From NCBI GenBank assembly GCA_964187785.1, contig OZ076411.1:44268001-44332000 (forward strand): a stretch of 64,000 bases of DNA. Direction: 5' to 3'. Shown here piece after piece: positions 1,691 to 58,753 of the stretch; the first letter of the stretch is position 1; each line of letters begins with the position of its first letter. This stretch comes from Amphiscolops sp. MND2022. Its lineage: Eukaryota. The translations under genes were made by a program, and so were the position numbers. The notes under the pieces were generated by a model, which had not been told where the DNA came from, made no database searches, and saw nothing but the letters and a program-made list of their open reading frames with translations.

Positions 1691-1968
1691 ATTTTGAAAA
1701 ACGGTAATAGAAGAAGTTAATTTTCGTTGGTGTAGTATATACATATATGATACAATAAAGTATATTATATAAGTATAGCTAACATTTTTCCATTGGTAAT
1801 TATCTAGACCAAAGGGGGACCCTCCAAAATAGAAATACTAAGACGGGGGAGGACCTCCTTACACAGGACATTACACAAAAACTATATTAGCCAGACACTC
1901 ACTCTTTATTCGGTTTTGGATGTTACGGAGACTTTTGCAAAGCTCTCGACTTTCGCATATCTCGTAAT

Positions 1969-2478
1969 GGGTGGGCGCAAATAGGTCGAAGGAACAGGAT
2001 CGAAAATCAGAGTTAGTCCTTGGGTCGACATACCAAATTTTTGAATGGGATCGAAACAACTCGGATCGAAATTTTGATTTTTGGGAAACGAATCGAATTG
2101 CCGCAGATAGAATTTTCTAGAAATGTATAAAACGTGTCTCGGATATGTCCCCATTTCCTCTAGTGCCCCGCGGCCCCTTGGGGCCGTTCATGTTCCCATC
2201 TTGCTAAGAGAGGTAGAACAGGAGCAAAGACCTAGCAGGAACGGAGATCGGGAAGCGACTGTAGTGGGAGCTGGTCTTTGGGACGGTAATGGCGAGCGTG
2301 CATACACAGCATATGTCCCACATTTTGATAGCCAATCGACTTGAGGCAAACAAAGAACGTTTTCGACCCGAACGTTTCGATCAAACTCGGCCGCACTCCA
2401 TTCGATCCTTGAAATTCAATCGAAAGGTTCGACCTCTGTCAATTGGACCAGAAAAATTCGACCTATTTACAGCCACCC
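1969..2478 (+). mobile_element. Non-autonomous TIR element (MULE-like MITE family M), copy 1, carrying cassette B
   Basis: 22-bp imperfect TIRs GGGTGGGCGCAAATAGGTCGAA / TTCGACCTATTTACAGCCACCC; perfect 9-bp TSD TCTCGTAAT (1960-1968 and 2479-2487). A 9-bp TSD points to the Mutator superfamily. Confidence 0.85.
2125..2324 (+). repeat. Short structured dispersed repeat, cassette B, copy 1
   Basis: GATATGTCCCCATTTCCTCTAGTGCCCCGCGGCCCCTTGGGGCCG...GCAAAGACC...GGTCTTTG...GCGAGCGTGCATAC; five copies in the window. Confidence 0.85.
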
Positions 2479-5268
2479 TCTCGTAATCAGGAGGCAAATG
2501 GTTTTTCCTCAGAAGGTGATTCAGTAGTAACGTTCCACGATACTTCAGAGACTGTCGTTGAACTTCCAAACCTAGCTGCGGTACATGAAACATATTGGTG
2601 CTAACATTTCGTGTGAAAGTCGATGAGCTCTTATGTGTGAAGAGACTTTCTACATTTTTATCAGTTTTGCCTCTCGTTGAATGAACGGCATATTTCAAAA
2701 GTTCACAAACATTCACAAACATAGAGATCATAAACATTCATTATACTGCTTCGTTTGAACAGCTCATCGGATTCGAAGAAAACATTTCGAAGTACTTTCT
2801 TTTGGAGCAAAAGTATGTCCTTCAATTTACTTTCCTTCGTGAAACCGTATACTAAAAGACCTTATTGGGTGATAGGCTTCATGTAAATGTTATAATATCT
2901 GATCACTATTGAACTTTTACAAAAATGTCTCAACCGCATTATCACTGATACATGTTTAGCCAATTTACCAAGTACACTTTGAACATGGACTTCGGAAATC
3001 AGATTTTTATCCAAGTGAAGGTCGTAGGTCAGTCTATCACAAATCACATCAAGACTAACCTTCAAAACTTCAGCAGTTACACCATCTAATCCCGCCGCAT
3101 TGTGGTTCTTGAGGTTGTGTACAATTTTAGAGATTTCCAGGGAATCAGTTGGATTGAAAAAGAGAAACTTCTCATTATTACATAATCCTTCAGTAGTAAA
3201 TGGAACAGTGGGAATTGAAGTAGCTAAAGTTTTGCTAATCGAAACGAACTACTCATTGAACACGTTTGATACGGCAAACTCATCAGTGTTCAATTTCTTT
3301 TCAGTGTCTGTGATTATAAAATTACTTTTCTCCTTCTGTCTACCAGTTAGTCGATTCAATTCGATGAAAAGGCGTTTTTGCGAATTCAAGAAACGGGTAA
3401 GTCGATTATCAAAGTATTCTCGTTTCTTCGACCGCATGAGTTCGCAGACGCGACTTCTCATTTTTGTGTATTTAGCTTTGTTACACGGAGTGCGATATCG
3501 CTTGTATCTGTTAAACGCGAAATTTCGTCGGATTATGCTTTTCTTTACATCTTTGTTAAACCAAGGTTTATTTGATTTTGTAACCTTTCTTTTTTCTTTG
3601 AAAGTGAAAACGTTGACGACTGTTGTGAGTGCATCAGCCAGACTTTCAGTTAACCTATCGACGTCCTGTCCTAAATTTGACAGTTCCAGACAATGCCTTG
3701 AGTAGTTTAGGTAATTCTCTTTATGATACCCATTTCGAAGAAATGGCTTTTTTGGCCTGGTTTGTTGAAAACGAATGGATTGAAAATTTGTTATATCCAA
3801 TTGAACATAGGTTGCATAATGATCTGTAATGTTGGTAGGTTTTTTTATACCTTGATAGGTAGGTTCTTGACGCGTAGGTTCTTGACTCGTAGGTTCTTTT
3901 ATACCTTGATAACACCCATTCAATTTCAAAGAGATTAAATACTTATTACCCAATCGCAGATGTTTACAGTAGATCGATATTCATGTCACCAACAAATAAA
4001 CATTTGCTAATATGACAACAAGTTTCAAGAAGAAGAAGAAGTTCTAATTGCTCCAAGAAGTTTTGTTTATTGACCGAAGGGGGATTGTATAAACAAACTA
4101 CATTAATTTTCTCCTTCATTAGATTGGTACAACTAATTGCAATGTAATTCAAATCAATTCCAATGTCAAATTCTAGTATTTCAAAAGATAGTGATTCATG
4201 GACGTATATTGCCACACCTTCATTTATAGTTTTTCCTGGTTGAATTTTCATTGGTGCATAATTATCTAAGACATAGAGGTCTTCAGCGGATGATTCAACC
4301 ATCCACGTTTCGGAGCAACAATCTAGGGATGTTTTATTGACTCCAAACGATTCTATCAATGTTTCTAATTCCTCGAAATGGTTGCCAATTGATCTCACAT
4401 TTAGGTGAAAAATCCACTCGTTTTCAACATTATCAGAAATAACAGTTTTGCATTTTTTTTCACGTTTCCGTTGTAATTTTTTTACGTTTTATTGTATAAA
4501 TGAGAGGGCCCCCTATCAAAAATGTAAGCTCGTCTTGCAAACAGTATATATGAAATCTGGACGCCATTCATATAAATTGACCAGGTTTTCAAAAGTAATT
4601 TTAGATTCATCAGTTTTTATAAAAGACTACTTTCTCATTTAACATGGCCACAGATTTGATCTCGGCTCGCAATCTTAACGCTTCAGCTAATCGCGCCCTG
4701 AACAAGGTGATGTCGTTGTTGATAAAGATTTTCTCTTCACATTCTTTCAGTGATTTTTTGTTCGCTATCAGCCCAATTTCTGTTTGTCAGCGTACAAATT
4801 TCACCATGATAGGGCGCCCTTCATATTTTTTCCGCTAGGTACCCGGTGACATATGCTGATGTCTGTTTTTGAAATTTGATGTCCCACTTTCATAGCAACA
4901 TCAACAACTTTTTGGTAGACATCCTCGTCGGCTTCTTCTTTCACTCCGAATATTCTGACATTATCTCGCCTTCCATACTGCTCGATAGAATCAGCATTGA
5001 ATCGGCTGGAAAGTTTACCAGTAATTGGGGATTGCTCGGAGTCTTGGGACTGCTTCTCACGGAGCTCCGAGACCTCAGAAGTTGCACAGAAGCCACACAA
5101 AAAAGGACTATTCATGAAACTTTTGGGTATTTGTTTTGGATATTTTTTTTGGATCCACGCCACACAGCTCTTTCCATTTTGCCCTTTTCCTGTAGATTCA
5201 ATCAGGTGTGACGAGCCCTCATCTTCATCTTGACTGGATGATGCCATTCTAGTAGAAGGCATGTTTCT

Positions 5269-5301
5269 CTATTTAATACGTTTATCACAACAATTAGGCT
5301 T
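5269..5301 (-). other. 33-nt spliced-leader-like sequence at the LINE 5' end (AAGCCTAATTGTTGTGATAAACGTATTAAATAG)
   Basis: Identical over 33 nt to 56511-56543, with unrelated flanks on both sides. Ends in AG 6 nt before the ORF1 ATG. The spliced-leader identity is an inference. Confidence 0.55.
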
Positions 5302-5449: not shown

Positions 5450-5595
5450 CTCGGATATGTCCCCATTTCCTCTAGCGTCCGCGGCTACTTATGTTCTCAT
5501 CTTGCTAAGCGAGGTCGAACAGGAGGAGAGACTTAGTCGGAACTGAGCTGTTCTTTGCGACAGTGAGGGCGAGCGTGCTTACGAAGCATATGTGA
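5450..5595 (+). repeat. Cassette B, copy 2 (GC hairpin deleted)
   Basis: Matches cassette B, but CCCCTTGGGGCCG is replaced by a short variant shared with copy 3. Confidence 0.8.
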
Positions 5596-44091: not shown

Positions 44092-46860
44092 GTAGGTAGG
44101 TAAGTAATATGGATTTTTCCATCACGGCCTGTGATTTCCTCCCCTTCAATATTCGTCGCAGTTGTTCGGATTCTCCAGGAGTAGACCAAGAGTCGTTGAT
44201 TTAGCCTTGAGGGTGTATGAAATTGACTGATTTCGGAAGTCTGTTTATGACAGCAACAGTCCTGTAGAAGAAACTGTCTCAGCCTATTTTCATTTTGGGT
44301 TTCTTCTCAAAAAGTCACTCGATCTAAGCAATCGATCAGAGTCCCTCAATTGAATACAACCTTTAAAGTTGTTATCATAATGACCGTTCAAACATTTTGA
44401 CTTTGTCAGTAGACCCCGGATTTGGCAGTAAAATGTAAGAGGGAGAATTTTGCTTTTTCCGAATAATCTAGATAACTTTAGTCTCCATTGATCCATCTCA
44501 AAATTTCTTTTAGGATTTTTTCAAGAGTTTTGCAACATTGAATATTCGGGTACCATACGTTACTGCCGTAGATCAAAATGGGCACTATCATGGCTTTGTA
44601 ATTTTTTAGCTTAGCTGTAGGAGATAACATTGATGAACTTCTCTTGACCATCCAGAGGATTTTCCTTGCTTTAGTAACTGCTTTTTTATGTGTTCGTACT
44701 ATTTCAGATCGTCAGACAAAGCAACACCAAAATCATTCTGTAGCAATTTCTTTTTAATTGGTTGACCTGAAAAGTACAGGAGATTATCTTGTGGTGGGAT
44801 TGACATGTGTGAACACTGGTCAAAGTTTATGGGTAACTTTTTCTATTTTTTAATGTGTAGCATATTTAAATTTATGTAGCAATTTTTTTTATTTTTATCT
44901 TGGTTGACCTGAAAGTATAGCAGATTATCTTGTAGTGGGATTGACATGTGTGAACACTTGTCAAGGATTATGGGTAACTCCATTTCTTATTTCGGGAAAG
45001 AAAGTTATTATTGCTTGTTACGTTGTCTAAAATAGTGGCCGGACTGGACGTCTGAATAGTGACGGTTGACTCTGACCGTTGACGATTGGTTAGATATGAT
45101 TTCAGGAGATTAGGCAGTTTGCCTCGAACATCATATTCGTGGAACTTTTGCAACTGTAGGCAGTGATCAACATGGTCGAAGGCTTTATCGTAGTCTGTAC
45201 ATAACATACTGACTTGTTCACCTTTCTCCAGTGATACTTGTCTGTGATTTTCGACATCGTATTTCGCAGTCTTTTTTGAAAGTTAGAGACACTGTTGATG
45301 CATTCCAAATATTTGGGAATACACCTGTTTCTTTTGTTTTGTAGAACATTTGAGATAAGGATTTGCTCAATGTTTGGGCACACTTTTTGAACTAAATTGG
45401 TTGGATTCCGTCAGGCACACTGGCTTTTGTAATATCAAGACCTTCTGAGATACACTGAATCCTGTTGATAGATGTGTCAACTTCTTCTAAAATTGAGACA
45501 ACTGAAACCTTTGAGGTGTGTATGAAGTCACTAGATTCGATGACAATTGATGCAAAGAGTTTTGAAAAAAGTTTCGCTTGCGAAAGTTGGTCAGTTGCAA
45601 TTTCGTTCTTGACATGAACTGAGGTTCGGATTTGAGTGGTTAAAATGTTCGATCGTACTTGAATAGAGACCCGGTTTTGCGGGATGCAGAAAAAATCGCT
45701 TCAAAGTCAGAGTTGTCTTCTTCCAGCATTTCTTCATATACCGTTTGAAGTTATTCGATTTTAGGTTTCTTGGTAAAGCTTTGCAGTTTCTACTTTCTTT
45801 ATAAAACTGGATGTGGCAGTTTGACCCAGGAGACAAACTGCTACGATGTGCGGCACGTTTTGGGACAGTTCTTTGTAGAATATCTTTCAACCAGTCGTAC
45901 CACAGCTCAAGAAGTACTTCAACATTGCTCCAACAAATACCGTTGAATGGTTTTTCTGCTATTAAGTTGTTCATCATATTAATGTTCATTTCTACTTGAG
46001 TGTTGTATAGTTTTAAATTACAAATTTTCAGGCTCTCTCTAGAGTAACTTATTTCGTTGATCAGTTTCCATCTCTTGGATAGGCGTTTCCTTTCGAGTTC
46101 TTGTTCACCTTTAATGAGCAATTTTCCAACATAAATTTCACAATTGTTTGCTTTATTGTAATCATTCATAGTGTATGCTCTGGACAAGAGTTTTCGTACT
46201 GTCCACGGGCTTGTAAGACTCAACACAAGTGGCCGGGGTCTTTGATCTTTTTTACCTGATTTCCGCTTTCCCAGTCTACGAACATCTGAGACACGAGAAC
46301 GGTCTTCGCAAAAGTGATTCAAAACATTTTCAACTTCAATTTTATCATGTTCCATCGTTTGAAGAGGGCCGACTTTTTCAGTTTTTTCTTTTGAATGATA
46401 TTCATTGATTCCTGTACTTTCAGTTTTTATGAGATATTTGTTGTCTAGGATAGTGAGTTTTGTTATTGTTAGCATGAGAGTTAACATGGGGGTGATTTGA
46501 GATTAGTGGAATTGTCTTATCTTTAAGTTCGTTGATGCTTGCTTTGATTTCCTCGCTGTATTTTTCAATCTCCAGTTTGTCGACTTTCTGGTTCTGATTC
46601 AGTACACGCACGGCAAAACCAGATACAACTATCTGCTTCTATGATTGTCATGGCGCCTTCGGGTAGTTTTGAGCAGCTATGATGAACCAAACTGTCACAT
46701 TTGTTGCATTTGATAGAGTCATCAGTTTCTTTAACTACATTCAAAAACGGACACGAGAGGGAAGATTTCCTGATGGTTTTCCCTCGTCGAGCCATTATCG
46801 TTGATGTCATACTGTGATATGAAACTATTTAATAGGTTTCTAAATAGTTTATCTAATAAG
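44092..46860 (-). mobile_element. CR1/L2-like LINE with PHD-finger ORF1; APE and RT domains 4-6 deleted; (TACC)n tail
   Basis: PHD: CNKCDSLVHHSC...IWFCRAC. ORF1: VRRLG..RPRPLVL..WTVRKLL. RT remnants: DGIQP, TDYDKAFDHVDH, SYLTNRQ. C-terminus: MIVPILIYGSNVW. 3' tail TTACTTACCTACCTACC. Confidence 0.85.
44741..44980. repeat. Tandem duplication, unit about 140 bp
   Basis: TTGGTTGACCTGAAA..AGATTATCTTGT.GTGGGATTGACATGTGTGAACACT.GTCAA..TTATGGGTAACT occurs at ~44759 and ~44900. Confidence 0.8.
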
Positions 46861-47639
46861 TTTCATAGTTTCAACCAACTTGCTTCCTACTAACTAACTT
46901 ACTATTATCGAAATGGAAGTCGATAACATTTAGAGCACTGGAATGCAAATTAAAATAAACAAGAATGCAAACTAAATTGAAGATTATAACACGCGATGTT
47001 AGAATTTAAACGAGACGATGCGACAAGCTACAACCAGAGCTCTGTCCATCTAAGCCATCGACCAATCAGTTGAAAGATATTGTCACATTTTTGAGGTCCT
47101 TTTTTGCGTACATCTAATGTGAAGTATTGAAGTTTTTTGTGGTTTCCTTGTCGTTGACGTCGGCTGTTTTACAATATTGATTAAGACAGTATCGGTCCTT
47201 TTGTTGAAGTTTGAATTTATTAGGAACTTGCGGGTGACTTGGGCTGACTTGGGCTGAAAAAATTTTCACAACCAGGTGAGATAATTCCATTTATATTTCA
47301 TTTTAACAATTTAAGGTTTTGTTTCATATACCGATCGCTTCAAAGTGGTGGTTGCTTTTCTGGGGAGATTGGCACGGCCCAAATGTAGAATTCCTGCAAT
47401 TGGTTAGGTCTCGAGGTTGAGTTTTGATGAAAAACAACGACACCAGCAACGCTCTGAAGTGTCCAAAGCCCTCAGTGTTGATAGACTGGGTAAATTGCAG
47501 GCTTTGCAACTAATGACTTCATATAAAATGTGCCAATTTATCATGATAAGAGGTTCGGAGCGTAGCAGAATTTAAATGTTATAGGTGCTCTTCGGTGATC
47601 ACTATCCCTCCTTGTCACGATTAGAACTTTATACCAGAT

Positions 47640-48420
47640 ACCCTTTTAAATTCAGGCGTTGTTCCCTCGAAAAAAGCTGCTAAAAATTCATAGATCCCCC
47701 TAGCTGAAAACGTGATACCCAAATTCACTGATCTTTGTGAAACCCCGTCGGTCGAACATTGCCTTGTGGTGGTTATTGCTTCCTCTCTAAGCTGTTTTTT
47801 TTGGAAAAACAACCCCGAGGAGGTAAACGCAAAGGTCATCACTGAGTGCAATTATCAACAAGCGTAATCGCGATGGCATTAGAAACAAAACCAAAACGCG
47901 GCAGAAAAGCGCAACAGAAAAGCAAGTTAGATCGAAGACTGCGTTCCATCTGCACTAAATTAAACGAAGGTAAAGGCCGGAATCAGAATGGCAGTAGGCA
48001 ACGACAAGATTGCAGATTTGACGGTCAACAACTACGCGGCCCTCAAGTTGAAACATCCGCAGAGGGAAACTGGCTCTGTTCCGGACCCCACAGATCTCGA
48101 TTATTTTTCAACTTCTGAGTTCTTCGTCCACAAGACTTCTATGTCCTCTCTCAACGGCTCTAGTGCATGTTTGGATGGCTTTTTGCCCCAAGTTTTGAAA
48201 AAAGTGACTGTCGAGTCGAACGGGCAAACTGGACGGAATTCTGTCAGTGCCTTAACAATTTTTGTGAAAGGAGAAGTACCTTTCGAAATGCGGCCGTTCC
48301 TCTTCGGTGCGCAACTAATTGCGCTAAAAAAAGCCCGATGAAGGACTTCGATTTAAAGCTGTAGGCAATACTCTCCTCCGGTTGTCCGCAAAATGTGCCG
48401 GATATCATATTTTCGAATAA
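47640..48420 (+). mobile_element. CRE-clade non-LTR retrotransposon fragment (pre-RT and RT N-terminus)
   Basis: QPRGGKRK, LKLKHP, GSSACLDGFLPQVLK, GEVPFEMRPFLFGAQLIALKK...AVGNTLLRLSAKCA match the CRE RT entry motifs. Confidence 0.75.
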
Positions 48421-51400
48421 AGAAGATTTGTGGCGACAGAACCATTCTTAGGGATGGTGCGTTTCTGAAATTGAGAAGACTTGCGAGCTGCCACTAACTT
48501 CGCCTGAATGTAACCTTTTCATGAAATTGAGCTTTGGACATAAATACTTAAGTCTTTGATGCAGTTGACAATAGGACTTTCATTTCCATCCAACATGACA
48601 GTTACACTTGAATTATTTCGCCCATCAAAGTAGAGACTTTTGCATTCATCAATATTGAAATACATGAGATTTCCGGTAGCCCAATTCTGAATGTTGACAA
48701 TGTCATGTTGTAGGTCAAGAATGGATCGAGATAGTAAATTGCTATCATGAGCGAACAGGTAACATGACGATTTTGTGATAATATCGGATAGGTTGTTGAT
48801 AAAAATGATAAAAAAGAGGTTACTTTTGACAACTGTGATAGAACACCGTTGACGGAAAGCTGGAACCTTGAGGGGAGATATGATTGGAAACATTCGAGGA
48901 AATCACTATCGAATCCAACGTTAGCTAAATTGTGAAGGAGAAGGTGACGAGGGACAATATCAAAAGTTTTCCGAAAATCAAAATAGACAGCATAGCTCGG
49001 AATGTTTGAGTCCTTTCGATTATAGAACTCTTCTAAAAAATCGAGAAGCTGTGTTACTGTCGACCGTTTTCTCATGAAACCGTGTTGTTCGGTACAAACT
49101 TTTTCCCTCACATGGGATAAGATAGCGAAAGAGTAGCTTCTCGAGTATAATTGACACCTGAGGCAAAACACTGATAGGTCGATAAATTTCGACACTTTCT
49201 GGACCATCTGATTTGTATTTTGGTGTTATCGTTGAACACTTCCAGAGACTTAGCCACTCTTTGGTTTGATAATCTTTTCAAATAACTGTGTGACTAATAG
49301 CGCTAATATATCTGGGCAGCGGTTGAGGAAACGTTTGTGGTTGGATCGGAGCTTTTACAGCTAGTTGAGGCCTTTAACAACAGTTCCGGAACTTCATAAG
49401 TGTTAATTTCGAAGTTGCACAAAACGATTTCAGGGTTTTGAGGATTAGGCAATGATGTAGAGAGACTCGTTACATAGATTGAGCAGAAGAAAGTGTTCAA
49501 GAGATTTGCTATTGTATTGATCGATTAAGCTGATAAGTTTTGCCAATGCATTCGGTACGGTAACAGATTTGAAGAGAAGGACCGAAGATATTTAAAACAT
49601 GTACGCGTTGAATGTGGGGAAAGGCTGTCGATAAGAAGGGTCTTGTCTAGCTCAATAGACTGGTTGGCATCTTCACGGAGTTTTGAGGTATATTCAAGTT
49701 TATAGTTGTTTTTGACGGCAGTACGTGTCTTGTTCAGCAAGTGGATTGTATAGGAACAGTAGTGAAAGGGAAACTGCATCCGGCGAGAGTTTTTCATGGA
49801 GCAGGTTTGAACGCAGGCATCGAAAATGGTTCTGTGCCATAGCTCAAAATATTCTTCCAGAATTTGTCCGAATTGGAACGAGACAAGAGTGTGTGAAACT
49901 TTGGAGAGAGGCTTTCATTGAAATGTGTTTTTGAGAAAGAAGACATTGAAAAATTGGAAACACCTTCAGTATTAGGTTCAGTCAGGGCTGATGGAATAAT
50001 GAACAGAGCGAACAAAATATAATTGTCTGAGTAAAAGTTCCCATCCACGAACACTGTATACAGTTCCGGAGAGGTAGACAGAATAACATCTAGAGTGTTT
50101 CCCGATATATGCGTAAATTTAAACACAAGTGGCTACATATTAGGACTCTCCGCATTAGCTAGTAAGGCGCCAGATTAATCAGATTTGGCGGTGATAGTTG
50201 CCCAACAAACGTCTTCAAGATTCAGATCACCCAACAAATTGAAAGAATTAGTGGGTTGGTCTTGGAAATGTTTATGACAGGTAGTAATGCTTGCGCTGAG
50301 TCCGTCTGCTTAGAATCTGTAGGTATATTTGGACGGAGGGTTGTAAATCAACAAGAACAAGTGGGAGCTTTGTATAGCTAGGAAAGAGATTGCAACAGAG
50401 TTCGTTGAGGGTTTCAACTTGAAAGTAGTTCAAAGCAAAGGTTGTTTCACAGCAATAAGGACACCACCGTGTTCTCTATTGACACGATCTTGTCCAGCAA
50501 GGACGCCATATTTGGTCCTCAAAGGAAGTACTTCTGACTTAGAAATGCATCTGTACAACCACGTCTTTGTTCAAAAAAGAATATCGGGTGAAAGCAGGAT
50601 CAAAAGCTTGAGGATTTTCAGGCGTTGTTGTAAACTTTTCCGAATTTGCACATTAACAAGGCTTGCTTTCAATTGATGTCATTTCTGGAATTCAACATTA
50701 TCACTATTTTTCAGAGCTTTCAGCCCTGATATGAAGCTCTTCACGGGAGAAACCCTCACTGATCAGCTGATAGCGCTTTTCAAGAAGTTTGCGTTTAGTG
50801 GCCTGGTCATCTTTAGTGATTTGAAAATGATGATTTTGGATGGGTAATTCTTTAGTTTTTGGCTCTTGATAAGCATTTTCTCATGTCCCATTCTGAATAA
50901 AAGCGGCCGAAAAAGGGCCTTGGTTGGGTTGATTCTTTCTTGTACATCCCGAGTCCTCGTGTATTTTTGATGTTGTAATGGGATGTATCAAAGTATTTCA
51001 GAACTTATTGTAGTTTGTTATTATCTGCCTCAATAAGTCTCTGCGCCTCACCTTTTTCCTCCATAAGACCAGTTATATAATTTTTTTTAGAAAATAGACT
51101 CTAAATTTCGTGACTTTGCCCGGGTCCTAAAGGTCTTTAGAGTGGCTTTCATTTCATCAAGGGTGTTTTGAATGTTTTTCATGGTCTTTTTCACTGTTCA
51201 ATTTGTAATCACAGAAGACTATTAGCTTCGGAATAGAAGACGTTGTCGTCGAGGCAGCCATTACCCAACCAGAGACAACCACTGATTCTTCACAGAGTGG
51301 TGACATCGTGCTCGGAAAGACCAACATATGTACAATGTGTCGTGAGGGAAAGACTACTTGCAGGAAGTTTCCAATTGATGAGCAATCATATTAGGCATAC

Positions 51401-54400
51401 CTAAGACAATTAGGCTAACATAAACAACACAACGAAAGTATGTACCAATAATAATAACTTCATATATATTACATTCATAACACTCCTTCCCGCTGCGAAC
51501 GTCTCTAGTTCCTCACCAACACAAAATCGCCCAGGTATGTAGGCGGTTTTGTGTTCCTTGCCGAGCGTCGCAATGTGGAAGCAAGAGAAACCGGACTAGC
51601 TTGAGATTCCTTTCTGGTTCTACAGGTTCAGGTGGCTCACACTGGGTTCCGATGTCGGAGTCTACGTTAGTCTCTGCACTGTTCGCATGGTTGCGAGATC
51701 GTTCCTTCGTTGTCATCCCGCGGTCGTCGAGAGAAGTCACTGGTAAAAACCGTGTCAACGCGCCCATCGCCAAAGGAGACTCGTGCAAGGTGAGGGGAGA
51801 TTACTTCGGGTATCTGTACAGGAACAACTGGAGCTTGGTCTTTTGCCCTTACGAATTTCCGGAGGTAAGCGGAAGTGTCTGTCTTGAGTCAAGGTGCGCT
51901 CCTGAAGGGACGGATCAGTGGCTCACCGCGCTTGAAACAAAAGAAGCGGTCATCTGGACTCTTCTTGGTGACGGTATTGATGAGTGTCAGTATCGATAAG
52001 CGCCGAAGTAGGACACTTTCCTGGTCAGAGAGTGGGCGGTTTGCGGAATGTAACAAGCACTGAACGGTTTTCCACACAATTCGGTAGTAGCGTTCCTTTT
52101 GGCCATTGCCTTGAGGATGGTACGGCGTAGTGTTGGAAGTCGCAATTCCATTTTAGCGGCAGAAGTTTTGGAACTCCGATGAAACGAACCGCGTCGCCCG
52201 GTCGGAGTGGATGAACCCGGGGTTCCGAAGATGACAAAAAGTGTCAAACGACAATTAATGACGTTATTAGACGTGAAGTTCCGGAGAGGTAAGGTGACCG
52301 GAAATCTACTAAACTCATCCACCACTGTAAGAATGTTTTCGTTTTTGCTTCGAGTTATTGGTTTAGGGGCAAAAATGTCTATTGATAGTCGCTCCCAGGT
52401 TTGGAGGACCGGATAAGATCGCTGCCGGGCGGCCGCAAAAAGTGCGGTTTCTATAGAGCGCACGGTTTGCAGTTCTCAGTAACCCTTTTTGCCTCATCTA
52501 GAGAGATTGGGACTTTGTATCGTTGATTGTACTCGTACAATCGGGAAACTCCCGGATGTGCAAGTGTCTCGTGTAAGGTTTTACAGCTGAGCTGTATGGT
52601 CGCTAATCGAGACAAGGCGTCAGCTGGCATGTTCTGAGCACCCTTCTGATAACTTATTTCGGAGTCGTATTTCAATAGTTCCAAACGCCAGCGAATCAAC
52701 TTGTCAGTTTTTACTTTGGATGAGTTGGGTTCAAATAGCAAAGAGAGCGCCTATTGGTCGGTGCGAACCAAAACTCGTGACGTACGTAGGAGGTCCGAGA
52801 AACGGCGAAAGCCTTCCAATATAGCCATAGCTTCCCGTTTGACAACCGAGAACGCCATTTCACTATGTTTCAAAGTTCTCGAGAAGAAGCCGATAGGTTT
52901 GTCGCCCTGATTGAGTGTCGCTCCGATACCTGTTCCAGACGCGTCGGTTTGGAGAACGAGTCTCGTTTGCCCGAGAAGACAGAATAAAGCGGAGGCAACT
53001 TCCTTCTTGAGAGTTGTGATAGCCAGTCGAGATGCTTGATTGAGCAGAAAGGCAAGTTGTTTCTGTGCTGCGAGAAGAAGAGCAACCTTATTTGAGTAAT
53101 CTGCAACCCACTTTGCGCTGTACGCGAAGAATCCAAGAAAACGTTTCAACTGGGACGAGTTTTCGGAGATAGGGAAATCCATCAGAGTCTTGATTCGGCT
53201 CGGATCAGGGCGTTTAGATCCTGCTCCTACGATGTGACCAAGCATTGGCACTGGCTTGGTTTTGTTCAGCGTCAGACCTTCAATCTCGGTCGCTTTTAAG
53301 AAGTTCTTCAGGTTTTCTTGGTGTTCTTCCTCGGATCTGCTACGGGTGATCACATCATCAAGATATAGTAGCGCTTGTTTCAGGTTGTGCCTGCGCACAA
53401 ATGCTGTCATTTCTCTTTGAAATGCCGCTACAGCGTTTGTGACACCAAAGGGAAGTCTGGTGAACTCAGAAAGACGTCCGTTTACTCCGAACGCAGTGAA
53501 TGGCATGGTGTTGCGATGGAGTGGTATTTGATGATCCGCAGATTTCAAATCGATTTTCGAAAAAACAGTGTTCTGAACTGTTTGATCAAACAAGTCTTGC
53601 ATATTTGGGAAAGAAAACGCATGCTTGGACGTATGAAGATATATTGTCTGCGGATAGTTGATAACCATCCGTGGCTTGGGGCCGTCCCTAACGACAGAGG
53701 CTTGTGCCCGCCAGGGAGACGTTGAAACTTGAATAATGCCATCAGTGAGCATGCGGGTAACTTCGGACTCCATAAAGCGATATCTTGCAGTTTGTGGCAG
53801 CGCGATTTTGTAGCGATCAGTTTCGCACCATAGACTGAACAGAAATTTTTGGTCGGAGGGGCGATTTTCATTTCCGGGAAGACCATTTCCTTGATTCCGG
53901 CTCAAATATCATTCTCTGGTCGATCACCATCTATATCCAGTCTGACAGAGTGTTGTTGTCGGAGAACGTCAAGTCCGAGAATAACATCCGCAACAAGGTG
54001 TTTTGCAACAGTGAAGGTAACTTCGTAGGTCCTTTGGTTTATCCAATTTTCCCTTGAGCGGTACCTGACGTAACCAGGGAGTCGCCATTTGCCACGTCAG
54101 TCACCTTGCGTTTCGCTCGGACCTTCAGACCATATTGGCAGCTGTTGAGGCGCTGATAAAAGAGCGCGAGGACCCGGTAGCAACCATCGCTTGATCTGGT
54201 TCATTGCGTCCGGCAAATTTGAGGCTAACTTTCAATTTGGCAAGTGACTGGCCAGTACTACACGAAACAGCGGCAGTCTCGAGTTCGTCATCACAATACT
54301 GTTGCAAGACGGCAGCAGTCGATCTACATCCCGACGCCCAGTGTCCTGCTTTGGAGCAATTGTGGAAAGTGTCCTTTTTGGCGGGGCACTTCGAGCGTGG

Positions 54401-55052
54401 GTGCTGTTTTAGACAGCAGAACTGACAGCGCGGACGGGTCTTGTTCGCAACCTGATGGGCAGCGGATGTGCCAGGTCGATCAGGTTGTCGCCGGGTTGTC
54501 CGAGAGAACGGCTTGGCCGCAGCTACAGTTGAAGATTCAGCGCTCCCAAAAGATTTCGAAAAGTCACTGGATAGTTCGATAGCACATGCAAGCGACATGC
54601 AGCTATCGTTGTCGGCCTTTGATTCTTCAAGCTCCAACAGTTTTGCCCGATTGTCGTCTGACCTGAGCCCTGATATTAAGGGGTCTCGTAGTAATTTTTA
54701 TGTGCTTGAATGGTCAGACTCGTTTTAGTCTTCCAGAAAACTGTACGATGGATTCATTGTGCCTTTGGCTGGCACTGAGCATTTGATTACGGGCAAAAAG
54801 CACCCTCGTGGGCTTGGCTTTAAAAACTGCCTGTCCAACGTTCTCAGTGCGTCTGCAAAGGTTGCAGAACTTTTGAGGAGGATGAAATAGTCGGAGTCGA
54901 CAAATGTACGAAGGAAAACTAATTTGTCAGCATCTTCGGTTGTGCCGTTGATACATTTCTGCCACCATTTCCAATTCGCAGGAGAAGGGTTTGATGGCAT
55001 GTCGGGTGGCTTGAACTTCACGAGAGACAAAAGAAGGAATACAGCGCATCGA

Positions 55053-55236
55053 CAATTGCTACGAGGAACATAAGAAAGTACCGTAGTAGCAGAATGGACA
55101 ATAGCTACGAGGAACTTAAGAAAGTACCGTATCAGCTGAATAGACGATAGCTACGAGGAATTTAAGGAAGTACCCTAGTAGCAGAAAGGACAACAGCTAC
55201 GAGGAATTTAAGGAAGTACCTTAGCAGCAGAATAGT
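55053..55236. repeat. Tandem array, 4 x 46 bp, between the SGNH-like ORF and gag
   Basis: Unit starts at 55053, 55099, 55145 and 55191; core GCTACGAGGAA.TTAAG.AAGTACC.TAG.AGC.GAA. Confidence 0.9.
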
Positions 55237-55283
55237 GAAGTCGTTTACCTGAAGACAGGTTGCGTGGCTTAGCGCGGGCAGGT

Positions 55284-55833
55284 TCAATGACCCCGACGGC
55301 ACTCGTATGTTTGGAGGTGACCTCGTTTGTCGATCTGGGGGCAGAAGGCTTTCCGAAGCACTCGAGTCTTTAAGATAGACCGAATTCCACTGATGGTTTT
55401 TGGCTCGAGGTGGATGTCATCTCTGGTAGTATGCTTTCGATGCTGTAGATGCTTCGGGATGTGCCTCTGTGAAGCCACCTGTGATCGTTGTCGCTTTTAG
55501 GAGTCGATATAAAATCTTGGAAAGGTGAAGGATGTTTAGCCGGGGAGGAGCCGCGATGACGAAGATTCTGAGTGCGACTTCAGAGGCTGCCACAGCAAGG
55601 TCGGAGATGTTCCTGGCAAAAGTTTTAGTGTTGCCGGTTGTTGAGTCGTTGCCTCCGACGAGGAGCACGATCAAATCATACTGTCACTTTGCAGGTAAGA
55701 AGGGTCTCACGTCTTCAACTTGTTAATCTAGTAGGACGAGGATATTGAAGTTAGGGAACATCAGGTTCCTTCCTTGTGAATCCGTGATAATGAGATTACG
55801 CGTGGGCGAGGTCTTGAAGAGGTGATAACACAT
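55284..55833 (-). pseudogene. SGNH/GDSL-hydrolase-like ORF (two in-frame stops, one frameshift)
   Basis: From ATG at 55833: LIITDSQGRNL (block I-like) ... YDLIVLLVGGNDS (block III) ... and in a shifted frame RDDIHL (block V DxxH). Confidence 0.7.
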
Positions 55834-56004
55834 GAGGTATTATCATATTGAACTGTCGTGATGGATTATCAAACTTAATTGTCGTGAGGGAAAACACTAC
55901 TTGCGGGAAGTTTCTATTTGATAAGCATTCATCTGAAGCATACATACAACACTTAGGCTAACATAAGTAACACAACGACATTATATACCAGTAATATTAA
56001 CTAC

Positions 56005-56352
56005 GGGTTGCTGTAAACAGGTCGAGTTTTCTGGTCGAAAGGACAGAGGTCGAACCTTTTGATCGAATCGCAGGGTTCGAATGGAATGCGGTCGAATTTT
56101 ATCGTATTTGTTGTATGGCTCGGTCGCTTCGCTCCTTTCGCCAAGTAGCGATATTGAGGCATGGTCATATGGCACGTCGCTCCGCTTCGCTTCGCTCCTG
56201 CATTCAGGGCACTAGGGGTATGTGAACATATCTGACTACGTTATTGAAAATTCGATCCGAGTTCTTTCGATCCCATTCAAAAATTTGGTAGGTCGACCTG
56301 AGGACTAACTCTGATTTTCGATTCCGTTCCTTCGACCTACTTCCGGCCACCC
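56005..56352 (-). mobile_element. MITE family M, copy 2, carrying cassette C (56104-56244); inserted in the Gypsy 5' LTR
   Basis: TIRs GGGTTGCTGTAAACAGGTCGA / TCGACCTACTTCCGGCCACCC; TSD ATTAACTAC/AATAACTAC (8/9). The other LTR shows the empty site. Confidence 0.85.
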
Positions 56353-56510
56353 AATAACTACATATATATTACATTCATAACACCATGATACCAAGTAGAA
56401 CAGTTGTCACTTGGTATGCCAGTTTTGTCAACTTCTCTCACGACCTTCTTGCAACTTCCGCACTTGGAGTCTGAGGTTGATGTCGTCTTGGTTACCTTCA
56501 CAACCGGAAA

Positions 56511-56543
56511 CTATTTAATACGTTTATCACAACAATTAGGCTT
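56511..56543 (-). other. Second copy of the 33-nt spliced-leader-like sequence, at the 5' end of a different LINE
   Basis: Identical to 5269-5301; followed on the minus strand by the PHD-type ORF1 of the LINE. Confidence 0.55.
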
Positions 56544-57675: not shown

Positions 57676-57774
57676 ATATCCCGGGAGTTGACATATTTAT
57701 TCCTTGAGTTGGAATGGAGTTGGCTTAACTTTGACTAAACTTTGAGCTAAACCAAATGACTCGACAATAAAATT

Positions 57775-58753
57775 GGGTGGCTGTAAATAGGTCGAATTTT
57801 TCTGGTCGAAAGGACAGAGATCGAACCTTTTGATCGAATTGCAGGGATCGAATGGAATGCGGTCGAATTTTATCGTTTTTGTTGTATGACTCGGTCGCTT
57901 TGCTCCCTTCGCCAAGTAGCAACATTGAGGCATGGCCATATGGCACGTCGCTCCGCTTTGCTCCTGCATTCAGGACACTAGGGGTATGTGAACATATCTG
58001 ACTACGTTAAAAAATTTAGATCCGAGTTGTTTCGATCCCATTCAAAATTTTGGTATGTCGACCTGAGGGACTGTCATAATAGGTCTGAAAGAATAGGTCC
58101 GAGTTTTTTAGTCCGACCATAAGTCCGAAAGAATAAGTCCGAATCGAATAAGACCGAAAACTGACCGACTGATTAAGTTCGAACGTGCGATTTTTTGGAA
58201 ATAGTTCGAATTTGTCAAATGGCAGAGACTTTTAGTTTATATAATGTGGGGCATATGCGATGTATGCACGCTCGCCCTCACCGTCGCAAAGACCAGCTCC
58301 CACTACGATCGCTTCGCGATCTCCGTTCCCGCTAGGTCTTTGCTCCTGTTCGACCTCGCTTAGCAAGATGGGAATATAAGCGGCCCCAAGGGGCCGCGGG
58401 GCACTAGAGGAAATGGGGAAATATCAGAGGCACGTTTTGTACTTAAAAAAACCGCGTTAAATTTCGTCCATTCTGCAAAAAATCGCATTAAATTTCGTTA
58501 GTTTTTCATAACAATTGACTATTTTTTCATAAAAAACCGATTCGGACTTCGTTAGGTTTAAGTCATTCGTATTTCTTCCATTTTGCATTCCAGTCGAACT
58601 TATTCTTTCTGACTTATAGCCTTGTTGAAATAGTCGGACTTCTTACTTCTTTCTTGCAATTCGGTCATCGGCATTCGGACCTATTCGCCGCACCCGACCT
58701 GAGGACTAACTCTGAGTTTCGATCCCGTTCCTTCGACCTACTTCCGCTCACCC
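57775..58753 (-). mobile_element. MITE family M, copy 3, carrying cassette C (57880-58008) and a nested MITE
   Basis: TIRs GGGTGGCTGTAAATAGGTCGAA / TTCGACCTACTTCCGCTCACCC; TSD AATAAAATT/GAAAAAATT (7/9). Confidence 0.8.
58069..58695. mobile_element. Nested MITE with AATA(A/G)GTCCGAA subrepeat arms, carrying cassette B copy 5 (58243-58443, minus strand)
   Basis: GACCTGAGG is duplicated on both sides (58060-58068 and 58696-58704; 8 vs 9 bp ambiguous), and the uninterrupted site GTCGACCTGAGGACTAAC is seen at ~56293. Ends ...TTCGGACCTATTCGCCGCACCC. Confidence 0.8.

Follow-up and report, generated by a model that had tools for sequence, protein, structure and literature searches.

Two LINEs at this locus differ in their coding sequences and begin with the same 33-nt motif, and the question is where that shared 5' end comes from. 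The original prediction regarded the motif as a spliced leader (SL) that had been trans-spliced onto LINE RNAs and then carried into the genome by retrotransposition. The motif was analysed in the window, which is the whole stretch of 64,000 nucleotides, and in the 1.07-Gb genome from which the window was taken.

The two motif copies and the LINEs behind them

The exact-match count of the 33-mer in the window is two. The copies lie at 5269-5301 and 56511-56543, each on the minus strand. The chance expectation for such a repeat is zero, and allowing up to three mismatches yields no extra matches. The sequences on both sides of the two copies are unrelated, upstream as well as downstream, and the count and the flank comparison agree with the original prediction of two identical 33-mers with diverging flanks. 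The base ahead of AGCC is random among copies that were picked by LINE body and not by motif. The leader proper is therefore 32 nt long (AGCC...ATAG), and the first A that is common to both window 33-mers is probably flank. The features of the window, together with related copies elsewhere, are as follows.

1709 to 5268, minus strand: LINE 1, a decayed element of family 1 (Group I ORF1 superfamily) with internal deletions and small insertions
5269 to 5301, minus strand: SL relic 1, genome-encoded (SL proper 5269-5300); SL position 23 is G, and AGAAACATG follows without a gap (junction class A)
46825 to 46839, minus strand: SL relic 3, truncated at its 5' end to the final 15 nt of the SL, with C at position 23
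48416 to 51337, minus strand: continuation of LINE 2, 86% identical to the family-2 copy L129 over 2.8 kb
51338 to 56381, about 5 kb: later insertions that are nested in LINE 2 and split it
about 51513 to 53905, minus strand: Gypsy-like LTR element inside LINE 2, with RVT_1, RT-RNase H, and an integrase H2C2 zinc finger
56382 to 56510, minus strand: 5' fragment of LINE 2, an element of family 2 (Group II PHD-finger ORF1 superfamily)
56511 to 56543, minus strand: SL relic 2, genome-encoded, with G at position 23, joined to TTTCCGGTTGTG
56005 to 56352, 57773 to 58068, and 1966 to 2478: dispersed repeat of about 350 bp, also at L130:408-756, with 85-94% identity between copies

A LINE ORF1 directly after each 33-mer had been claimed, and one is found behind both copies. 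The ORF1 of LINE 1 (4801-5262, minus strand, 153 aa) has its ATG 6 nt past the motif. Behind SL relic 2 come TTTCCGG and then the ORF1 of LINE 2, which is cysteine-rich and PHD-like and has a mutated start codon in this copy. LINE 1 also retains a weak AP-endonuclease fragment (3964-4398), and its 3' end (...AACTTCTTCT) lies at about 1709 with a short TCT repeat. Both window LINEs are old and decayed. Over 2.3 kb, LINE 1 shares 86% identity with the family-1 copy L128, which carries a reverse transcriptase (RVT_1). The continuation of LINE 2 holds an RT fragment at 48602-49207, and the better-preserved L129 carries both Exo_endo_phos_2 and RVT_1. SL relic 3 leads into TTTCAT and then, at 46565-46810 on the minus strand, into an ORF1 of the PHD-finger type. 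Further partial SL-like pieces adjoin this relic on its upstream side (window 46565-46880, minus strand). The dispersed repeat of about 350 bp is also inserted into several of the LINE copies that were compared, and its copy at 56005-56352 is one of the insertions nested in LINE 2.

The products behind 51 SL-bearing loci were translated and clustered, and they form two ORF1 superfamilies. The type of window copy 1 is found at 14 of these loci and the PHD type, like window copy 2, at 13. The clustering puts the two window LINEs in different superfamilies, just as their ORF1s had been described as dissimilar. A young family elsewhere in the genome is 3.76 kb long and has two copies that are 99.5% identical. 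Its member L171 encodes a PHD-finger ORF1, an Exo_endo_phos_2 AP endonuclease, and RVT_1. The elements are LINEs of the AP-endonuclease type, with reverse transcriptase and AP endonuclease in ORF2 and ORF1 upstream. They are dispersed in many copies (40 of family 1 and more than 20 of family 2) that have unrelated flanks and share 3' ends carrying short repeats of TCT or TAC.

The motif as the spliced leader of the host

The genome contains 277 matches to the 33-mer at one mismatch or fewer. Most of these matches differ solely by T in place of G at position 23, and many of them lie in tandem arrays on contig 1 (C1). In the arrays, GTAAGT comes right after the motif, and beyond it lie a stem-loop of 10 bp without mispairs and AAUUUUUGA, a standard Sm site. 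Genome-wide, the SL 3' half joined to GTAAGT gives about 1,282 matches, in tandem arrays that repeat roughly every 0.9 or 2.9 kb. The large arrays of SL RNA genes, with units of about 904 bp and about 2.9 kb, are located as follows.

C1:15.41-15.47 Mb: SL RNA gene array
C1:16.23-16.67 Mb: SL RNA gene array
C2 and C12: further SL RNA gene arrays

The 2.9-kb repeat unit also carries a 5S rRNA gene (L016:1729-1847). The 120-nt SL transcript is predicted to fold like a canonical SL RNA (z -3.16): the 3' part of the exon is base-paired to the intron sequence that surrounds the splice site, and the Sm site is unpaired after the 10-bp stem-loop. A search against Rfam recognised the 5S rRNA neighbour alone and gave no match for the SL RNA itself. 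An SL RNA gene had been proposed as a check on the motif, and such genes, composed of the motif, GTAAGT, the stem-loop, and the Sm site, are present in these 5S-linked arrays.

The use of the motif on RNA was examined with contigs from four poly(A)/total-RNA metatranscriptome runs of three studies, which were aligned to one SL-LINE locus. Dozens of the contigs start with the SL and then diverge into unrelated sequences. One of them encodes a protein that starts with MAKSKNHTA, which we take to be an RPL29-like mRNA. In another case, an Illumina adapter is joined straight to base 4 of the motif. LINE 5' ends stand behind the SL in two contigs, and a few contigs read from other (flank) sequence into the SL. 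In all of these assembled metatranscriptome contigs, which may include related species, fresh trans-splicing and a transcribed genomic relic are not separable. The LINE fragments among the contigs are of low depth, and transcript starts are not readable from such contigs. For one family-1 copy, none of the runs recorded as RNA contains the sequence, and only small shares of a young LINE family were found in the RNA runs.

Apart from lacking the first two bases, the SL published for the acoel Symsagittifera roscoffensis is identical to the motif, and SL trans-splicing in that species has been reported for 10,433 genes, which is 30.2% of the total (PMC9911081). Both the RNA contigs and this published SL answer the proposal that the 33-mer be sought at the 5' ends of host mRNAs. 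The 33-base motif is the host's own spliced leader, with the host taken to be the acoel S. roscoffensis or a species very close to it. The acoel SL and SL-bearing LINE RNAs are also present in seawater poly(A) metatranscriptomes (three runs), and the SL could mark acoel transcripts in environmental data.

These results bear on the reading in which the motif is an ordinary 5' UTR common to related LINEs or a chance repeat. That reading has nothing in its favour beyond the repeat itself, and it meets a motif for which zero chance matches are expected, which more than 1,000 SL RNA genes carry as their exon, and which is present on host mRNAs. Its probability is practically nil.

SL position 23 (window 5279 and 56521, minus strand) is G in both 33-mers of the window. 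The same position is T in the SL genes and rarely A or C. Among about 650 otherwise perfect cores in the 1.07-Gb genome, G23 occurs in eight, which differ in their downstream sequences. None of the assembled SL genes has G23, and all eight G23 cores are retrocopies. Two of the eight stand just 51 kb apart, in the window. The pair could be the product of an SL gene variant that is lost or unassembled, or a coincidence. G23 was also considered as proof that the SL on LINE copies is renewed, and it was dropped since random mutation in old copies gives a similar count.

The insertion boundary and the junction variants

A perfect 24-nt SL core whose next base is not G is found at no fewer than 649 dispersed loci, on both strands and on all large contigs. 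Forty dispersed full-length matches were sampled in genome order. None of the 40 is an SL gene; all are retrocopies, mostly of LINEs from many families, and they form at least 30 sequence clusters. A genome-wide look at the motif next to LINEs had been suggested, and the association extends far beyond the window. When copies were chosen by their body, nearly all of the 40 copies of family 1 and about 20 of the 25 aligned copies of family 2 begin with the SL or its truncated or decayed form. The upstream flank is individual to each SL-bearing copy of both families. The original prediction had named an upstream extension of the similarity in other copies as the result that would speak against it; such an extension was looked for, and the other copies each have their own flank.

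The start of the inserted DNA can be read directly from L171. The left and right flanks of this young copy directly adjoin each other in a paralogous repeat, which lies at 5522 to 5435 of the window (minus strand). Because the flanks are joined in this paralogous empty site, the inserted DNA starts at the SL, within 1-3 nt. The 5' edge of the inserted sequence is formed by the SL itself. Target-site duplications that begin right at the motif had also been suggested, and no clean duplication was found for either window copy or for three young copies. At window copy 1, the comparison of the 29 nt upstream with the element and its 3' flank gives only an 8-mer, which lies away from the junctions. 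The duplication at L171 is at most 2 bp (TA). The upstream flank of window copy 2 abuts the end of another repeat, and no empty site is derivable there.

In another reading, the LINEs would insert site-specifically into SL genes or SL-like targets, with the motif as target DNA. Such elements exist in nematodes and trypanosomes, where NeSL-1, SLACS, and CZAR are LINEs that target SL RNA genes and carry a restriction-like endonuclease. The LINEs described here resemble them in their association with spliced-leader sequence. However, the insertions here are dispersed, their flanks are unrelated to SL genes, and their endonuclease is of the AP type and not restriction-like, which sets them outside this group. 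The upstream sequence differs at every locus and does not resemble the upstream region of the SL genes, the 3' flanks are not the SL intron, and the flanks of L171 join in an unrelated repeat. Insertion specific to SL genes is excluded because the flanks are never SL-gene sequence, and site-specific insertion as a whole has a negligible probability.

The junctions between the SL and the LINE body exist in several forms. The SL followed by TTTC is found at 515 loci, or about two thirds of the SL retrocopies, with continuations that include TTTCAG, TTTCCGG, and TTTCAT. These loci are dispersed and not arrayed, they comprise both ORF1 superfamilies, and the ATG of ORF1 follows within a few bases (window example at 56505-56510). 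The TTTC extension is absent from the SL genes. In family 1, the SL is joined either directly to AGAAAC, as in the window copy, or to TTTCAG that is then followed by AGAAAC. The hexamer TTTCAG matches the consensus of a 3' splice site. One candidate source of the two junctions, a longer SL that itself ends in TTTCAG, was rejected, as no SL gene has a TTTCAG extension and the 515 loci are dispersed.

The maximum-likelihood tree of family 1 was constructed from 300 nt of the body. The two junction classes are interspersed on this tree as if at random, with 10 changes where shuffling gives 10.5 on average. At least 3-4 switches are forced by well-supported branches, for example by a sister pair of opposite classes with 98/93 support. 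The same alternation of junctions is found in another family (L158 and L159 versus L148, L149, and L152). A third family has 32 long copies with a leader region that ends in TTTTCAG, and seven copies where the SL is attached precisely behind that AG. These seven copies comprise both subfamily variants and have independent flanks. In family 2, to which LINE 2 of the window belongs, no second acceptor lies behind the SL (TTTCCGG), and hence this family offers no internal test.

At four loci in four families, a new 5'-truncated SL is joined to an older relic just past the AAG of that relic. By our own estimate, about 0.2 such loci would be expected by chance. These copies prove that an RNA whose transcription began ahead of an integrated relic went through trans-splicing and then retrotransposition. 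Every alternative LINE junction comes after AG. Trans-splicing of the host SL onto LINE transcripts has occurred many times and at several AG acceptors.

One LINE clade carries the reverse complement of the 3' part of the SL about 6 nt past the SL, and the two form a 13-14-bp hairpin that is followed by TTTTCAG. The copies of this clade are as follows.

L003:1420-1533, minus strand: copy of the hairpin clade
L155:60-120: copy of the hairpin clade
L135, L157, L154, L165, L167, L151, L166, and L177: further copies of the hairpin clade

The hairpin in L155 has a fold z of -5.1 and resembles stem I of the SL RNA. The copies that were spliced at TTTTCAG lose the anti-SL hairpin. The hairpin could be a bait for the SL RNA or a mimic of it.

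Three copies of family 1 on contigs 11 and 12 (L090, L093, and L096) carry a full SL that is preceded by partial SL pieces, and these pieces do not end in AG. The pieces may be template jumps of the reverse transcriptase between SL-bearing RNAs.

Template switching could also be proposed for the SL as a whole, where the LINE reverse transcriptase would have switched onto SL RNA or onto an SL-bearing mRNA. The U6-L1 chimeras of mammals are chimeric retrocopies that arose by template switching, and splicing is insufficient to account for the partial pieces of the three copies above. As a general source of the leader, template switching is nevertheless very improbable. The SL part stops exactly at the exon-intron boundary, and the SL intron is never present. 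Had the enzyme switched onto SL RNA, the 3' portion of that RNA would have been copied too. The LINE side of each junction comes after AG.

A proposed life cycle and its comparison with known systems

The SL genes, the use of the SL on mRNAs, the boundary at L171, and the AG junctions agree with the claim of trans-splicing followed by retrotransposition. We hold it to be very probable that LINE RNAs are SL trans-spliced, copied to their very 5' end, and integrated, with the consequence that full-length copies start with the SL. No shared unspliced upstream region was found among the copies sampled from families 1 and 2. Family 1 exhibits about 2-12% terminal divergence and a turnover of subfamilies. 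From the two observations together we infer that the SL-bearing copies themselves are the sources of new copies.

The life cycle that we propose would proceed as follows. The LINE transcripts would receive the host SL as mRNAs do, and the capped SL-LINE RNA would be reverse transcribed to its first base and then integrated. The integrated copies would act as sources, and their transcription would come from upstream, by read-through or from a nearby promoter. The new transcripts would be trans-spliced mostly at the AG that ends the old relic and would give the same RNA again, and this renewal would go unmarked in the sequence. Less often, splicing at a TTTCAG a few bases downstream would give shorter 5' ends, and splicing at the AG of relic bases 2-3 would give tandem SLs. 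The SL relic would thus be a self-renewing acceptor that gives a defined capped 5' end to any transcript that runs through it.

The alternative to such renewal is inheritance. The SL would have been captured rarely and passed on as an ordinary 5' UTR, an internal promoter would start at relic base 1, and trans-splicing would be a dead-end side event. The SL exon itself would then possibly be an intragenic promoter element, and in Ascaris the transcription of the SL gene requires the SL sequence itself, which counts for inheritance. On the tree of family 1, the short junctions of class A occur singly and scattered rather than in large clades, which fits dead ends of long-form masters, and family 2 has one junction only. 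On the other hand, the 32-nt SL is identical to the exon of the SL genes in young copies of families that are unalignable right behind the SL. Inheritance would need strong selection on all 32 bases to keep it so, and this perfect identity favours renewal over inheritance. The tandem SL-on-relic copies prove that transcripts started upstream were trans-spliced and retrotransposed, and some RNA contigs run from flank into the SL. As the main mode of propagation, we consider inheritance unlikely on this evidence, though much less so than the other alternatives.

A stronger form of the renewal reading is that whole LINE lineages have lost a 5' promoter of their own and depend on host trans-splicing instead. 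The SL relic together with the conserved TTTC(A/C)G behind it or, in one clade, the anti-SL hairpin would then be a portable and self-regenerating acceptor cassette. We put this forward tentatively, at somewhat below an even chance. If true, the cassette would turn any read-through transcript into a capped, translatable, and retrotransposition-competent RNA.

The retrogenes of dinoflagellates are known to carry relic SLs as a result of mRNA recycling (reviewed in PMC6050394 and PMC12014239). Like them, the retrocopies in this genome have a genome-encoded SL at their 5' end and, at four loci, a new SL on an older, truncated relic at an internal AG. The marks of relic-SL recycling are thus present here, in the dispersed SL cores (at least 649) as in the SL-on-relic loci. 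However, the relics of dinoflagellates are carried by host genes, whereas the carriers here are autonomous LINE families. The dinoflagellate relics also pile up, as their acceptor lies inside the SL, whereas the SL here ends in AG and re-splicing would leave a single SL.

In Hydra, host SLs have been reported on the 5' ends of transposon RNAs, and about 30% of the TE Iso-Seq reads carry one according to the SL-related passages of that report (PMC12220107). The Hydra case is at the RNA level, and the same passages contain no report of an SL that is fixed in DNA copies or defines their 5' end (PMC12220107). In the literature outside subscription journals, no description of genome-encoded SLs on animal LINEs was found.

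The R2, RTE, and L1Tc elements have HDV-like self-cleaving ribozymes at their 5' end (PMC3185411, PMC4035085). The SL relics resemble these ribozymes in that a defined LINE 5' end is released from a longer co-transcript without an upstream promoter of its own. The element itself encodes the HDV-like ribozyme, whose cleavage produces an end without a cap, whereas here the host spliceosome would process the transcript and supply a capped leader. No HDV-like ribozyme was recognised in the window, where no Rfam family reaches the gathering score, and the 5' regions of both window LINEs fold no better than shuffled sequences.

The finding has consequences for the annotation of this genome as well as for the biology of the LINEs. 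SL-based calling of gene boundaries in this species will catch LINE copies. Within host transcription units, the dispersed SL relics, which number in the hundreds, could act as acceptors for trans-splicing. The SL relic marks full-length retrotransposition events, and the junction variants record repeated rounds of RNA processing, such that the life cycle of the element is readable from the genome alone. Reverse transcription copies RNA only, and a LINE therefore needs an internal promoter, self-excision from a co-transcript, or landing by a promoter. A host SL that is copied into DNA and whose terminal AG is re-used by the next transcript would be a further answer to this 5'-end problem of LINEs, and the element would gain the same cap and leader as the host mRNAs.
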